A stretch of 64,000 nt of DNA from Anthoceros angustus (taxonomy: Eukaryota; Plantae; Anthocerotophyta): NCBI GenBank assembly GCA_010909165.1, contig MU008167.1:186001-250000 (forward strand), given 5' to 3'. Below are positions 3,297 to 25,500 of this stretch, piece by piece (position 1 is the first letter of the stretch; the number at the start of each line of letters is the position of its first letter). A program made the translations under genes and the position numbers. Under the pieces are notes generated by a model. That model was given only the letters and a program-made list of their open reading frames with translations. It was not told the origin of the DNA and searched no databases.

Positions 3297-4475
3297 ATGT
3301 GTTAAAAAAAAACATGGGACCGGAGGTTCTTTAGGAATCCGGTCCCCACCCTCGGTCCCCTATTTTTTTCGGGGACCGAGGGTTCATAAAAGGTCCGGTT
3401 TAAAATTAGTAAATTACTTAATTTTATATCTAAAGATTTATATTTATTATGGACAGATAGACCCATCTTATAATTGGTATGGTCATAAAGACACTTACCA
3501 TGGATTTATGGGCTATGTCTTTATTTATCTAATACCATCCATGGCTTATTAATATAGTCTTTATTCTATGAGATTTTATTAACTTATTTTGATACATCTA
3601 TAAAAAGTAGATATGTAATATTTTGCTTTGAATGGAGTTATAAATGTGTACAATAATTTGTTGATATGCACGTTCATCCATGAAGATGGACTAAGATATG
3701 GTATCTCAACCATAGGCTTACATAGGACTCTTATCCTATCATACTATGAATAGATACCCTTCAAGAGTACATAAGACCACAACACTAGCATTTGGAGCAT
3801 CACTCATTGTTGCTCTCCTTATTGTGGTATGCTTGTTGTTCTTCTTTCTTGCTTCTTATTCTTCTTCCTTGCTCCTTGTTGTTCTTTCTTGGTAAGGGAT
3901 CTTTTTTTTTAGAGCTCATCTCTTTTTAAGCTTTTTAGGTTTAGGGTTCATTTTTGTTTGAGCTCATCTCTTTTTAAGCTCTTCGCTTTTAAAAGCTTTG
4001 TTTTTTGGCTCTTCATTTGCTATATTAATTTTTTTAAAAAAATTAAAGGTAAAAATGGCTCATTTTTCTCAAAGTTCATCATCCGGGTTTTTTGGAGGAG
4101 CTCCACGTGATGACCAAACAAGGAGTGGCGACAATAGCCAAACAAGCCAACCGAGTCAAAAAAGACAAAAGGTGCAAAAGGCAAGAGTCTTCAAGGAAGA
4201 ATGGAAGGTTGCATTTCATTGGATGGAGTTGTGCTCAATCAATGTAGAGAATCGAAGGTTTTGTGTTGTTCGTGAAAAACATGGTCATGGTGTAGTGGGA
4301 CAAGCTAAGGCTGCGACTCAAGCTTGGGTAAAAGTTGGCGGTCGAACTTTCAAGAGTGCATTGGAGGACCATGCAAGGAGTACATATCATTTAGCCATCA
4401 AGATGGAGCAAGCCCAAGCCAAGGCTCAACAACCAACCATGCAACGAACTTTGGAAATGCATTTTTCCAAAAAGG

Positions 4476-19114: not shown

Positions 19115-21005
19115 CTAGATAAGAGTATTCTCGATCCATGAGGCTAGAACGAGAGCCGCCTGCTTCCACCTTGTGTCTAACATGACATCGTGTGCAACTT
19201 CTCGAATCAATTCCTTGGACCCTTTGAAAAACTCATGGGTCTCATCTACACCTTGATGGTCCTGCAGAACATACCAATAAGATCCATGAAGAGTCATTTC
19301 CGAATCAGGGTGAGAGTTCTTCGGAAGTGACAAAGAGCATGCAGACAGCTCACCACCAGAAAGTCATTCTCTGCCCCAACGACGAACACAGGTGGAGTTG
19401 CAGAGGAGACCGGTAGAGCAACTGGCAAGGAAGCGTTCAGTTTTCGAAGATCAAACAAAGGTATACGGGAGCTTGTTTTGAGTAACTCTTGGTATCTGCA
19501 TAATGGTTAACAAATTACACAAGGGCCCTGTGAAATGAAACAAAATGCAGCACAATGATTTGAAGCAACCTACCTTTTCACTTGGTCATCTGGCATATCA
19601 GGAGAGAAAAAACTTTCGCGGCAAAGGGGTAGCGAATTTGAGAACATTTTTGCTGCCAGACTTAGAGTAACCTGGCCATGAGGTTTATCCTATATTAGCA
19701 CCAAGAAAATGATGCTGTGACCTTCAACCTAGGGCTAAACTGGGTGCAGGATACCTTGACTGCAGTGATCGGTTTTGACAAGACATACCGTTGGACAATA
19801 CCCCTGCATTCGCTCAACACAATTTCTGTCAGCAGTGCCGCAGTTCTGTCATCCGTACAGACATGGTTTTGTTTTTGTTTCTGTATGCTTACCCATTGCC
19901 TGTGGGTGGTACTGAGCAGAGTAGAATGGCTGCTGCAAGCCTGGGGTAGTGATCTGCACAAAGCCAGCAACACAACGGCTGGCCTGTCAGCGTTAACCAA
20001 GCACCAGGCCAGCCAATGGCACCAGCTGGGCGACGTCTGGAAGGTGCATCAGCATGAGCATAGGTAAGGCCTAGGCTGGTAGAATGGAAACAACCCTCAG
20101 GTGCCACATTCGAAGGTCGCTCCACGGCATGTGACATCCGGCCGAGGTAGTACTGAACGATCAATCCTCCAAACGAATGCCCAACCAGCACAGCCTCATT
20201 GGCCAGGTTGGTCTGGATGAAGTATGCCACATCCCTTGCATGTGACTACTGCAGTCATCAGGAGAAGTGCGGCAGAGCATCAGCTCAGAAGAGAACACTC
20301 CACTCACAGCACTACAATGCCCTGCCAACAGTGCACGACTGATACCTGCAGATCTCCAGCAACCTTCTCTGGGGGAGTGTCACTTCCACCCTACACAGCA
20401 CAGCACAACCTCCTGCATTGAAGCAACTTCTCATGGAGCTAATGGACTCATCAGCCCCCAAGCTGTGTGATGAAAAACGACAAACACAACAAACAATGGC
20501 AGGAAAAGTGACAGCCCACCTGGCCAAGTAGGCTGATTGCATAACAATCATGCCCACGATCTGAAAAAAACGGCAACCAATGCTCTGCCCAGCACCAGGC
20601 TGCATGGTAGCTTCCATGAATAAACACAAGCGGTGCCTTGCCAGACGACCGCTCCCGCCCAAGCTGAGAAATCACCTCGAGTCGCAAGCCGGATGGCAAT
20701 GTTTGGAAAAATCTTGCCTGCCCTTGGCTCAAAGCAAACAGAGGAGACTGTGCCTGAGACGGGGAGTCCACAGATGTATGCACCGCCCTTGAGATTCCTT
20801 TCACCTTCACATTAGAAACGGCCACCGAGGCCTTCAACCCACAATAGTTGCCAGCCTCAGAGCTTGCCGAGAGCCAGGATAACGTCAGTCCAGTTGTTGC
20901 TGGACACCTTCTGGGCGCATGGTGACCTCGGGGATGGGGTATTCCACATACCGTACCCTCCAGAAATGGTGACACCGCAGCAGGGCTGATCCAATTCGAC
21001 GGCAT
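19115..21005 (-). CDS. Alpha/beta-hydrolase with an N-terminal organelle-targeting-like extension, multi-exon
   Basis: Exons give PLVFIHGSYHAAWCWAEHW, the nucleophile motif GHSFGG, VVGAENDFLV and a last exon with EVAHDVMLD (catalytic His) ending at 19115. GT-AG introns were traced by eye. Confidence 0.9.
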
Positions 21006-21157
21006 TGCGAATCGCAGCAGGTAGGAAGTCGCCCTAGTTCACCGGAACCTTGTTCGCTTTCGAGTCTGCTGCGTTTGAGGTTCCCTGCAGAGGAGGAGAA
21101 TAGTTCGAATTTCACAGTTCTGGGAAACTGCCTGCTCTGGTGCAGTGGTCTGCAAAT

Positions 21158-21697
21158 ATGCAGATCTTTGTGAAGACTCTGAGGGGGACGACCATCACTT
21201 TGGAGGTGAAGAGGTACGATACCATCACCAACGTCAAGACCAAGGTCCAGGATAAGGAGAAGATTCCACCTGAGCAGCAAAGACTGATATTTGCTGGCAA
21301 GCAGCTGGACGATGGGCGAATAGTGGCAGACTATAACATAGCCAAGGAGTCCACGCTCCATTTGATGCTCCGACTCAAGGGGGGAACCCTGGCTGCTGTG
21401 TCCAGGGCCTGTGTGAAACGGCTTCAGCTTGTGGGAGTGGGATATCGTGCTGCTGTGGACAGCAGCGAGCTTACCCTGAGCTTGGGCTTCTCTCATCCAG
21501 TCCGCATGCCAATCCCAGAAGGCATTTCTGTCAAGGTTGAGGGCAACACCAAAATATACATCCTTGGCTTTGACAAATGTAAGGTAGGGAATTTCTCTTC
21601 TGCAATACGGCTGCTCAGGCCACCAGAACCTTACAAGGGCAAGGGCATCCGGTATGTGGATGAGGTTGTGAAAATCAAGGAGGGCAAGAAGAAATGA
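21158..21697 (+). CDS. Ubiquitin (76 aa, divergent) fused to the C-terminal half of an organellar/bacterial-type ribosomal protein uL6 (103 aa); intronless
   Basis: 21158-21385 reads MQIFVKTL...[11 protein letters not shown]. 21386-21697 reads [40 protein letters not shown]. One uninterrupted reading frame. Confidence 0.93.
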
Positions 21698-22561
21698 ACT
21701 CCCCCATGGAGTGTGCTACTGCTGATTACTTGGGATTTGAAGTTTCACATGTCAGGGATAGGTTGTGTAGATCGTATGGAAGTGGCGGGAATTCCAAACT
21801 TCTGTAAGGCTGTGATCCTGCAGCAGACTCATTGTCCCTTCCCATTTTACTTAGCAAATCCAATTTTTGTTCAGTTGTTGCAGCTGATTGTGCTGCACCA
21901 AATTTTAGCTTGCCAGAACGTTCTTGTCATGATCAGCGAGCTGGCGATGTCTATGGAAGGCTGCTCACACGAGTGAGCACTTTCAGGAATCATTGGTGTC
22001 TTGTCCCAAGTGTGAAAGCTTCAGTGGTGATAAAGCACTGAACCAAGAGTTTGAGAGTTGTCCACAACGTCCAATTTTCAAGATCAAGATTAGGTTACGA
22101 ATCCAGTGTTAATTGTCAGTAACCACCAAGCATTCTTGAAGGCGGTCAGGTCTCAAAGGCAGTGGGAAGGCAGCCAGTTGTGGCTGGTGCAATCATTTAA
22201 TGGATGACGTTGATACAGCTTCAGGGAATGAGGAAGACATAAGGCTGATTGCCTTCTACCACCGTTCTAGACTGGGTGAAAGGCTTATGGAGTAGATTGA
22301 GACCAATCTTGTGAAGGGTTGGTCTTGAAAAAGATGTACGCAGTCCCTTCAGTATGAAGGTATGCCTGAGAGACATTTGCAGACATTGATAAGTCACTGT
22401 GTCCTAAATCTAAAGTCTCTGTTCAGAGAAGGCGTTTGCAGAGATTTGGACATCGACAGTCTTGATCCCTCGAGTTATTTGCGGCATTACACTTACTTGA
22501 ATTAGCATTGCACCTGTTCCTGTGCTTCTCACAGATTCAGGAGAAGAGACCTTGGTCTGAT

Positions 22562-25500
22562 ATGCAGGAACATAGACAGTCGTCCGGCGTTTTGGAAAAG
22601 AGACTGCCCAAAGAGAAAAAAGCATCTGGCGGTGCAGCTGGGAAGCTAGGAAAACCTGTCCGCTCATCTGTCAGCTCTCTGCCTCTTCTGTTTGATCTCA
22701 GTGATTTCAAGGTAGGCGGCCTGCTTGAATGCGTTTGTACAATTATATATACTATGCACGACGGTGGATATTTTGCACGATGAGTTATCAATCTCTGTTC
22801 GTATGGGCTTCTGTGCAGAGCCAATTCGTCTTTGATGAGTTCTTCAACCAGCTCGTCCAGGAGATATGGGGAGTTCAGGACACGACACCTTCAAAGAGGG
22901 CAAGCATCCAAAGTAGAAAGGAAGCTAATGGTCCAGCACCAATGCAATCGGAAGGGCCAACGAAGCTGATTGCTGGGGTTGCTATTCCAGAAGCAGAACC
23001 CATACTTCGGATATTAAACGATGCCAAGGGAGAGATTGTAGGACTTAGCAGCAAGGTACCTAACAGAGGCTGTTGTGTACAAGCACTAAAAAGCAAAATA
23101 CCGTCAAGTGGACAGTAGCTATTGTGTGGCAGGCCTGCCCTCACCCAATTTCAATGAGCAGGTTATGGGGCGGCTGGATAGTCTGAAGAACGAAATAGCA
23201 TCACATGAAGGAAAGTGCCAGGACCAATTTTTGCAGGTAACGCTCTGCATTTGCTGATATCAACTGTAGCAAGTCAGTACTCAGGTCCCATTTCAGAAAT
23301 GCCTATGCATCTGAACCACAACCTACGAGCAGCAGCACATAAAACTTCTCTGGCATGCAAATATGATTTGTCATGGTCCTTGGTCGTGGATCTGGTATGA
23401 GACATAAATGTGTACCAATGATCATGAAGATGACTTCACAGGTTAAGAAGGCATTAGAAGGATTGTTTGAGTGTTTCACACGGCTTGATAAGCGTGTCAC
23501 AGGAGTGGCTCAGACAGCAGCAAGGATCAGCGACCAACTTCAGGTCTGAGACTATGTTCTGATAGTCTCCTTACTTTCCTCCACAGATATTTGGCTTCAC
23601 CACTAATTAAAGTAATGCGTGTCTGAACAGCATACTGACCAGCAGAAGGACTGTGCTTATGAAACAGTGGACCTTATGAAGGTAACAGACTGCCGCCTCG
23701 CAGGTGGAAGTAGTTATGTATTCCTAGCTCTGGACGCTCGTTCCTTGTAGAGTATCAAGCAGTTATTATCTTTTTCTTGACCTAATATGCAAGTGATTTC
23801 AGTACATGGCAGAGTTCAATTCAAGTTTGCCAAAAAGTGAGGAGAGATCTGGTGAAGATTCAAGTTTGCCAAATAGTGAGGAGAGATCTGGTGAGGCTAT
23901 AAATGGAGATTCTGTGGATCATGCCAACAGCGATGCTGTGAAGCTTAGTGGGCTATCACCAATATTCAGTGATGACAAGAGGGTTGCTGAAGCTGCTGTC
24001 ATTGTTCAGAAGCTCCGTGAGTGCATCTCCCTGCATCTTTTGTGCACATATTGTTGTGGAGTGTTGAGAGAGCCTCTTGCACTCAAAGTAACACTTTCAT
24101 CCAGGTTCCTTCGCTGAGGGGAACATCAGAGGAGCTCCTGCTGGTGGTGGTGCTGATAAGACAGCAAGGGTAGGTCTGGATGTTGCAGTGGCAAGGCTTC
24201 AGGACTACTGCAATGGTCAGTGACATAATGTCAGGTCCCCAACTCGTAAATCTTGTGACATACGCGTATTGGTTTTCTGAGTTGAATCGTCGCTAACTGC
24301 AGAACTGGAAAATCGCCTTCTTGCCAAATTTGATATGGCATGTCAAGAGCGAGACCTGAAATCTATGGCAGATTGTGCCAAGATCCTTGGCGAGGTATTC
24401 ATAAGTAGAGGCTCAGTTTGGCAGTTTTATAAGCCATAAAACATTTGGACTGATCTTCTTCTGGTCCTTACTCGCGGTCCAGTTCAACAGGGGAACAAGT
24501 GCAATGCAACGGTATGTGGCAACATTGCCAATGTTCATCAATGTTGAGGTGATGAATATGGATGTGAAGACTCTGCTTGGTGAGGAGTCCCAGGATGGAG
24601 CACCTTTTTTGGAGCCTGACAAGGTTGGACAAGGGCTGGCCATCCTTTACAAGGGGATCACAGGTAGTTAGATTCCTGATTCTATTTGTACAATTTTTTT
24701 TCTAACGCCACATGCTCTCAAGCGATGCAAACATCTTGTACTTACAGATTCCTGTATCAGACACAGTCAGAAAGGAGTCCGCTGTCATAGCTGTTGTTTT
24801 CCCGTCACCAGCTGCGGTCATGGCAATTCTTGTCCAGGTAACGGAGCGAGTTTTGGAAAAACGTCAGCTGGGTATATGTTAGATAGACACATTGGTTTTC
24901 TTGCCTTGCAGAGAGTTTTGGAGCAGCGAGTCCGATTGGTGGTAGATAAGGTTTTGGTGAGGCCTTCCCTATCAGTTCCTGTGCCAATGGAGCAAGGAGG
25001 CTACTTGCAGGTACAGTTGTCCAGTTTGTCCCATTCTAGACCACCAGCATGGTGTGTGACGCTCACTTGTTCTGATCACAAAGTTCCCTGAAGCAGTATC
25101 TCCAAATCCTCAGCACCTGCTATGAGAGGACACTGGGACTTGCCAAGGATCTGCAAACATTCTGCCATGATCAACTGGAATGTGAAGGTAGGATGCAAAA
25201 CCAACTGAAATAGTTTTAAGAGGCTGTTCCTACAATTCTGCTTTGAGCACATTGTTATTCTGGAAAGCGTAGCTTGATAATTTTTGTGAATTTGGTATCC
25301 AGGGGTTGCTGAATCTTTGTTCTCTGAACACAGAGATAACTATCCAGAGTTTGAACGGGCTTCACTCAAGCAGCTCTTCGAAGCGAAGGTAGACAGGACT
25401 TACACGGCTGTATTCTGGCTGGCAGGTCAGCAACTGTTGTTACCATTGCAGAGAGATGTCCTCGTGCGCTGAGCATTTTCTAAAATCTCTCATGGCCTGA

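Follow-up and report, generated by a model that had tools for sequence, protein, structure and literature searches.

A transcribed ubiquitin–uL6 fusion gene in a hornwort, with a plastid-type uL6 half as a candidate substitute for mitochondrial rpl6

The window, the 64,000-nucleotide stretch of hornwort DNA analysed here, contains a forward-strand ORF (21158–21697) for a protein of 179 aa, in which one ubiquitin unit (residues 1–76) is joined in frame to the C-terminal domain of ribosomal protein uL6 (residues 77–179). This ubiquitin–uL6 gene is real and transcribed, and its uL6 half is under strong selection. The half was probably taken from the last exon of a nuclear gene for chloroplast uL6; it would be released from ubiquitin after translation, and its most likely destination would be the mitochondrial ribosome. 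Taken whole, this account of exon-capture fusion, release and mitoribosomal use seems to us about evenly poised between right and wrong.

Structure and transcription of the gene

RNA contigs of the window organism (organism A, run X1) delimit the transcript (Table 1). One contig joins position 21016 to 21142, which becomes 21020 to 21146 when the cut is moved by +4, and the leader intron so defined has its 3' end 12 nt upstream of the ATG. Plant ubiquitin genes typically carry a leader intron just ahead of the ATG, so the 5' part of this gene resembles that of a ubiquitin gene. The X1 contig that spans 21142–22357 has 0 mismatches to the window and, being an independent RNA contig, argues that the ORF is not an assembly artefact; the X1 contigs are identified as RNA because they skip the introns of both neighbouring genes. 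The single ubiquitin and the ribosomal protein domain lie in one ORF, within one transcript contig. Contigs of two congeners also cover the ORF, at about 91% (organism B) and about 95% (organism C) identity. Their gap letters can all be placed outside the ORF, at 21093, 21751 and later positions in B and at 21770 and later in C, and the frame is therefore kept in three species.

Table 1. Features of the ubiquitin–uL6 gene in window coordinates
Feature	Position	Strand	Basis
Non-coding first exon, 3' end (5' UTR)	20995–21020	+	X1 RNA contig joint, 26 letters on the short side
Leader intron, 125 nt, GT..AG	21021–21145	+	RNA contig joint; donor gcag/gtagga, acceptor gtgcag/
Exon 2 5' UTR, 12 nt	21146–21157	+	Sequence and RNA contig
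Ubiquitin domain, 76 codons, ends Leu-Arg-Leu-Lys-Gly-Gly	21158–21385	+	PF00240 match, identity count, fold model
Junction Gly-Gly/Thr-Leu: predicted deubiquitinase cleavage site and putative former plastid RPL6 exon boundary	21380–21391	+	Comparison with L002
Plastid-type uL6 C-terminal alpha/beta domain, 103 codons	21386–21694	+	PF00347, TIGR03654, PDB matches, tree
Stop codon TGA	21695–21697	+	Sequence
3' UTR	21698–22245	+	Organism C contig ends at 22245

Downstream, the organism A contig continues to 22357 and is then spliced to 22533, in an exon of the next gene. Two readings offer themselves: an overlap between the 5' UTR exon of that gene and the long 3' UTR, or read-through by some of the transcripts. 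The next gene (22357–23500, forward strand) has further introns at 22710–22816, 23054–23159 and 23234–23438 and a probable ATG near 22562. Upstream, a divergent alpha/beta-hydrolase gene occupies 19574–21020 on the reverse strand, with five CT..AC introns (GT..AG when read on the minus strand); it has its start codon at 21005 and therefore overlaps, at its 5' end, with exon 1 of the ubiquitin–uL6 gene. In the RNA runs, word depth rises to thousands over the ubiquitin part only (21108–21375), where loose ends read like canonical ubiquitin. This depth stems from polyubiquitin transcripts that cross-map at the 80% likeness threshold, and not from strong expression of the ubiquitin–uL6 gene.

The ubiquitin part matches PF00240 over residues 3–73 (E 4.5e-27). 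Canonical ubiquitin is essentially identical across plants. The window domain departs from this near-invariance: it shares 60 of 76 residues (59/75 plus Met; 79%) with a canonical plant unit of the polyubiquitin match P0087. The 16 substitutions include K11T and R74K, and K48 and K63 are kept. The beta-grasp fold and the C-terminal Gly-Gly by which ubiquitin is recognized are both present: the domain ends LRLKGG, and an AlphaFold model, built on a small alignment, predicts a confident beta-grasp for residues 1–72 (pLDDT about 80–89). In the same model, the linker across the Gly-Gly junction (residues 74–82) has a pLDDT below 50, and residues 85–167 form a separately folded unit at about 80–85.

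Residues 77–179 match one Ribosomal_L6 domain (PF00347, E 7.6e-19). The profile TIGR03654 (L6_bact) is matched at profile positions 77–175 of 175 only, with 131 bits and a full-protein cut-off of 168.55, and no match to its positions 1–76, the first uL6 domain, was found within the fusion protein. Bacterial-type uL6 is built of two tandem domains over a full length of about 175 aa. The single PF00347 match and the restricted TIGR03654 match indicate that here, as a sequence-only reading of the window had described, the second domain alone is present, and that ubiquitin replaces the first. The GVGYRA and PPEPYKGKG motifs of the uL6 C-terminal alpha/beta domain are present, and they are invariant in our alignment (A2).

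Plastid-type ancestry and the exon boundary of RPL6

We searched a collection of 5.8 billion protein clusters by BLASTP with residues 77–179, a search with the whole fusion protein having been dominated by polyubiquitins. The closest protein is P0121, of 103 aa, at 87% identity (89/103 by our own count). All other matches of the half in this collection are at most 70% identical and are ordinary plastid uL6c. The gene for P0121 lies on L001, a genomic contig from Logan in synteny with the window. An identity look-up of the window protein in a 15-billion-protein collection did not find it, and a search of the ESM Atlas with the half returned bacterial uL6 fragments only. Automated annotation is likely to miss or mis-call ubiquitin-fusion genes of this type.

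Among structures in the PDB, the half is matched best by spinach chloroplast uL6c (5mlc_H; 131 bits, E 1.6e-37). The score drops to about 105 bits for E. coli-type uL6 and to 80.6 bits for the mitochondrial uL6m of Arabidopsis (6xyw_Af, 102 aa), which aligns from its residue 7 to 100. We then compared the half with 20 plastid-type, 10 plant mito-type and 22 bacterial sequences. Identities are 60–69% to the plastid-type (n=20), 52–60% to the bacterial (n=22) and 38–44% to the plant mito-type set (n=10). At 11 columns that are diagnostic for plastid versus mitochondrial sequences, the half has the plastid state in nine and the mitochondrial state in none. A first impression from one motif, that the domain lies nearer to plastid than to mitochondrial uL6, is borne out by the bit scores and by these columns. 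The mito-type sequences were obtained by scanning metagenome contigs with a short degenerate DNA pattern for PPEVYKGKG, which recovered ten plant mito-type rpl6 ORFs of 100–103 aa; one of them matches 6xyw_Af over its full length at 211 bits. Contigs L118, L131 and L162, from gut metagenomes, carry bacterial rplF and were left out beyond the ORF listing.

In a maximum-likelihood tree (LG+C20, 112 columns), the window half and its L001 orthologue pair with each other (100/99) and are nested in the plastid-type clade (97/96), which is the placement that the sequence-only reading had anticipated. The mito-type clade (100/100) stands apart on a branch of length 1.56, and the stem branch of the two halves is long (0.37–0.50). 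AU tests on these 112 columns rejected neither a grouping of the halves with the mito-type sequences (dlnL 7.6, p 0.29) nor one with alphaproteobacteria (dlnL 15.1, p 0.18), and a clade of the halves with P0127 and P0176, the closest plastid-type sequences, was neither supported nor rejected. The long mito-type branch can be re-attached at other places cheaply. Since AU tests are weak on so short an alignment, our assignment to the plastid type draws instead on clade support in the tree, sequence identity, the diagnostic columns and the gene structure. Together these support a plastid-type ancestry of the half, which would then not descend from mitochondrial rpl6. Its size is nevertheless that of plant mitochondrial uL6, as the sequence-only reading had also remarked: it has 103 aa, compared with 102 aa in uL6m, and the same single-domain architecture.

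Two length changes mark the half. Relative to plastid uL6c, five codons are deleted after Thr-Leu, and the C-terminal basic tail (21670–21694 in the window, and likewise in P0121) lacks three residues that every plastid-type sequence has, reading EGKKK in place of EGKxGKKK. The shortened tail has the length of that in bryophyte mito-type rpl6, a match that may be convergence or chance.

The junction with ubiquitin can be read against a plastid RPL6 gene. The sample that yielded L001 also carries a separate full-length, two-exon plastid-type RPL6 (L002), so the species with the orthologous half has a full-length plastid gene as well. Exon 1 of L002 encodes a long, transit-peptide-like N-terminal extension and the first uL6 domain; P0176 likewise has a long N-terminal extension and both uL6 domains. 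The L002 intron is in phase 2, inside an Arg codon, and the last exon opens with ACC CTC ACA GAT AAT ATG, that is Thr-Leu-Thr-Asp-Asn-Met, in the conserved context R/TLTDNM. In the window, the codons that follow the ubiquitin Gly-Gly are ACC CTG (Thr-Leu), the same two residues as the first two full codons of the L002 last exon. This correspondence is most simply read as the attachment of the last plastid RPL6 exon, at its intron boundary, to the end of a ubiquitin unit. The fusion point had earlier been placed at the boundary between the uL6 repeats; that placement holds and is now more exact, as it coincides with the last-exon boundary of plastid-type RPL6. The plastid protein proper is a two-domain uL6 with a transit peptide; here, ubiquitin opens the ORF, and in L001 the orthologue begins directly with the C-terminal domain.

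Of eight residue states specific to P0127 and P0176, the halves share at most two, and the duplication can therefore be dated no more finely than before the split between P0127 and P0176. It is old, and predates the split of these two species. We also considered a family of about ten half-size plastid-type matches (about 105 aa, starting MVVGVSKGF). Longer ORF calls for these show unrelated upstream residues followed by RTLTDNM, and most of them are thus ordinary plastid RPL6 genes whose last exon was called as an ORF; we rejected them as a family.

The orthologous locus on L001 and selection on the half

An Abhydrolase_6 gene lies upstream on the opposite strand both in the window and on L001, which identifies the two loci as orthologous; their flanking DNA is unalignable. 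Between the window half and its counterpart at 4001–4309 of L001, differences at the three codon positions number 9, 7 and 50, with a dN of 0.074, a dS of 1.56 and a dN/dS of 0.048. For bona fide plastid uL6c, the dN of the same domain between L002 and its relative L208 is 0.119. The dN of the half is not above this value, so the constraint on the half equals or exceeds that on a genuine ribosomal protein. The halves went through a burst of change, seen in their long stem branch, and then came under constraint, a course also described for plastid-derived mitochondrial rps13 (PMC2258280).

On L001, the ubiquitin is a relic. It persists in pieces in three frames, with Gly75-Gly76 changed to Glu-Asp and K48 to Gln. 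The codon immediately behind the former Gly-Gly has changed from ACC to ATG, and the ORF consists of the 103-aa half alone, so that the L001 protein starts at the residue that cleavage would expose in the window protein. We considered whether the L001 Met might instead be the conserved Met of the plastid TDNM motif, and dropped this after inspection of the L002 exon start, where Thr-Leu is the beginning of the exon and the ATG is derived from ACC. The decay of the L001 ubiquitin together with an ATG at the post-Gly-Gly residue suggests that selection acts on the free 103-aa half, with ubiquitin as a leader to be removed. On this comparison, a functional product consisting of the half alone is well supported, if indirectly.

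The ubiquitin part has evolved differently in the two lineages. Comparing the window domain with the L001 relic, codon-position differences are 20, 10 and 39, with a pN of 0.21 and a pS of 0.77. In the window lineage, ubiquitin is still under purifying selection and is not merely kept open, because 79% identity to the canonical unit is retained at saturated synonymous sites. A28T is the only substitution common to the window ubiquitin and the relic, and the ancestor therefore probably carried a near-canonical ubiquitin unit. The window half lacks a separate ATG, and its translation relies on the start codon of ubiquitin. The pair of species amounts to a natural before-and-after series in which a ubiquitin leader is gained, persists under relaxed constraint and is finally dropped; its two ends are the intact fusion of the window, and L001 with its decayed ubiquitin and new ATG at the cleavage point.

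Release, destination and alternative explanations

We propose that a ubiquitin gene acquired, in frame and directly after one ubiquitin unit, the last exon of a nuclear gene for chloroplast uL6, and that the fusion retained the promoter and leader intron of the ubiquitin gene. The product would be translated as a 179-aa ubiquitin fusion. Natural ubiquitin–eL40 and ubiquitin–eS31 precursors are cleaved by deubiquitinases after Gly76, and we infer a cut at the same place here, where the site reads Lys-Gly-Gly, Arg74 having changed to Lys. Cleavage would free a 103-aa single-domain uL6 starting Thr-Leu-Ala-Ala-Val. The freed half could then enter mitochondria without a cleavable presequence, as seed-plant uL6m does, and take the place in the mitoribosome of the product of rpl6, a gene that in hornwort mitochondrial DNA survives as a pseudogene. 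Import into mitochondria and a ribosomal function of the half have less support than its cleavage.

Several observations bear on the mitochondrial destination. Published tables score mitochondrial rpl6 as a pseudogene in each of the four hornwort mitogenomes sequenced, those of Leiosporoceros, Nothoceros, Phaeoceros and Anthoceros (PMC6082510), in keeping with the loss of ribosomal protein genes on which the sequence-only reading had built its proposal; uL6m must therefore be nuclear-encoded in hornworts. The plastid ribosome is provided for by the full-length L002 in the L001 species, and the product of the window gene has no transit peptide. Plant uL6m is the product of AT2G18400 (PMC6953067), and the nuclear-encoded uL6m of rice has no presequence, its residues 1–52 targeting GFP to mitochondria (PMC2631504). 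By a crude heuristic, the first 23 residues of both halves contain no acidic residue (+4/-0), and their fraction of Ala, Leu, Ser and Arg is 0.52, compared with 0.25 in the plastid parent. In nuclear-encoded seed-plant uL6m (L087, L091, L116, L179, L146, L147 and L170), the first 19 residues have a net charge of +4, compared with 0 in mitochondrially encoded rpl6 (L154, L167 and L182). This gain of charge fits the published view that a targeting signal evolved inside the mature N-terminus, and the N-terminal shift in the halves appears, on the same crude measure, to be of the kind that separates nuclear angiosperm uL6m from mitochondrially encoded rpl6.

A family search with a bryophyte-type mitochondrial rpl6 found no hornwort mito-type rpl6 copy among the best 120 of 2062 members. 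These 120 consist of mitochondrial genes of liverworts, ferns and charophytes and nuclear genes of seed plants, and three non-angiosperm family matches that we checked are mtDNA-encoded and come from other samples. Two further mito-type rpl6 ORFs (P0249 and P0266) look degenerate, with substitutions in the otherwise invariant PPEVYKGKG motif, and may be nuclear or mitochondrial pseudogene copies.

The destination is where an alternative has most to say. The gene could be functional and the half released while a separate nuclear mito-type rpl6 supplies uL6m, in which case the half would do something else, for example bind RNA in the cytosol in an extraribosomal or assembly-related capacity, or perform a specialised plastid function. 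The search for a nuclear mito-type copy covers the best 120 of 2062 family members, and a long stem branch would fit any new function. We nevertheless consider this reading unlikely, though deserving of real weight, because the half is constrained as tightly as a bona fide ribosomal protein, its domain boundaries coincide with those of uL6m, and uL6m has to come from some nuclear gene, mitochondrial rpl6 being dead in every sequenced hornwort. Normal plastid import is also improbable for a protein that lacks a transit peptide and has its N-terminus occupied by ubiquitin.

Release itself might be doubted. Ubiquitin has diverged at 16 of 76 residues, with K11 lost and Arg74 replaced by Lys beside the cleavage site, it is nevertheless under constraint, and it is similar in size to the missing uL6 domain; the fusion might therefore stay uncleaved, with the ubiquitin fold either filling the structural place of the N-terminal uL6 domain or docking on the ribosome. 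We judge this quite improbable, since L001 discarded its ubiquitin and starts at the post-Gly-Gly residue while the half remained strongly constrained, which shows ubiquitin to be dispensable for the function of the half. Moreover, Gly75-Gly76 is retained and lies in the disordered linker of the model, and an N-terminal ubiquitin would block N-terminal import signals. The unusual divergence of ubiquitin and the restriction of the gene to one lineage could also suggest a non-functional chimeric relic, whether a processed or shuffled pseudogene or an assembly artefact. To this we give next to no credence, given a dN/dS of 0.048 at saturated dS between syntenic loci with unalignable flanks, a frame that is intact in three congeners, and spliced RNA contigs with 0 mismatches.

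Release of the half followed by use in the mitoribosome, the reading that we prefer, combines two ingredients that both have precedents, namely ubiquitin–ribosomal protein fusions and plastid-type substitutes for lost mitochondrial ribosomal genes. The window gene resembles ubiquitin–eL40 and ubiquitin–eS31 (Arabidopsis UBQ1/2 and UBQ5/6 type) in three respects: a single N-terminal ubiquitin runs in frame through Gly-Gly into a small basic ribosomal protein, an intron in the leader closely precedes the ATG, a trait of plant ubiquitin genes, and deubiquitinases are expected to free the partner. It differs in that the partner is an organelle-type half uL6 and not the cytosolic eL40 or eS31, that the ubiquitin is 79% identical to the canonical sequence, and that the gene is lineage-restricted, with one lineage having already discarded its ubiquitin. 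Ubiquitin also acts as a cleavable N-terminal leader on a non-ribosomal partner in the ubiquitin–NiSOD fusions of algae (PMC6332867). There, too, removal of ubiquitin sets the mature N-terminus of the partner, and such fusions are easily missed by gene predictors; partner and lineage are different, and loss of the leader is seen here in a related species.

Plastid-type nuclear duplicates have replaced mitochondrial genes in the case of rps13 in rosids (PMC2258280) and of rpl10 in Brassicaceae and monocots (PMC2818186). As in those cases, a plastid-type nuclear duplicate exists here beside a plastid copy, the mitochondrial gene is lost or dead, and a post-duplication burst of change was followed by constraint. 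The differences are that only the last exon, one of two domains, is involved here, that a ubiquitin leader takes the place of a presequence, and that the plant is a bryophyte and not an angiosperm. Mitochondrial localisation was shown for rps13 and is proposed for the uL6 half. Plant uL6m (AT2G18400; 6xyw chain Af; liverwort and moss mitochondrial rpl6) resembles the half in having 100–103 aa, the C-terminal uL6 domain only and no cleavable presequence; it differs in its ancestry, with 38–44% identity, a separate long-branch clade and none of the 11 diagnostic columns of the half in the mitochondrial state. The rps14 gene within sdh2 of grasses is a transferred organelle ribosomal gene that is expressed through its host gene (PMC1543663). 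In both systems, a coding piece without a promoter or start codon of its own gains expression by joining a nuclear gene; the host here is a ubiquitin gene, and the connection is a direct in-frame fusion and not alternative splicing.

The combination of the two ingredients, the truncation to one domain and the bryophyte setting were not found in the literature searched. With a confidence that falls slightly short of even, we suggest that the dead mitochondrial rpl6 of hornworts was replaced, in place of a transferred copy of its own, by the last exon of chloroplast uL6, trimmed at its intron boundary to the single-domain form of plant uL6m and launched by ubiquitin as a cleavable fusion, and that one lineage then evolved an ATG at the cleavage position; this would be the first plastid-to-mitochondrion substitution of a ribosomal protein outside angiosperms, and the first ubiquitin fusion to an organelle-type ribosomal protein. 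If the half does serve the mitoribosome, a subunit of plastid ancestry would have been accepted there provided that it was trimmed to the architecture already in use. Organelle gene substitution of the kind known for rps13 and rpl10 in flowering plants would then extend to bryophytes, and in-frame capture behind ubiquitin would be a new route by which a promoter-less exon gains both expression and a defined N-terminus.

Short copies of plastid uL6c also occur in other plants. The annotated angiosperm genomes of Tasmannia (P0173 and P0138) and Ancistrocladus (P0234 and P0225) each list a 106-aa uL6c-like protein beside a full-length plastid uL6c, with the 106-aa copy probably on the same chromosome as the full-length gene. 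Three residues distinguish the short Tasmannia copy from the long one, which makes it a partial last-exon copy in its own right. Duplication of the last exon of plastid RPL6 may be a recurrent event.
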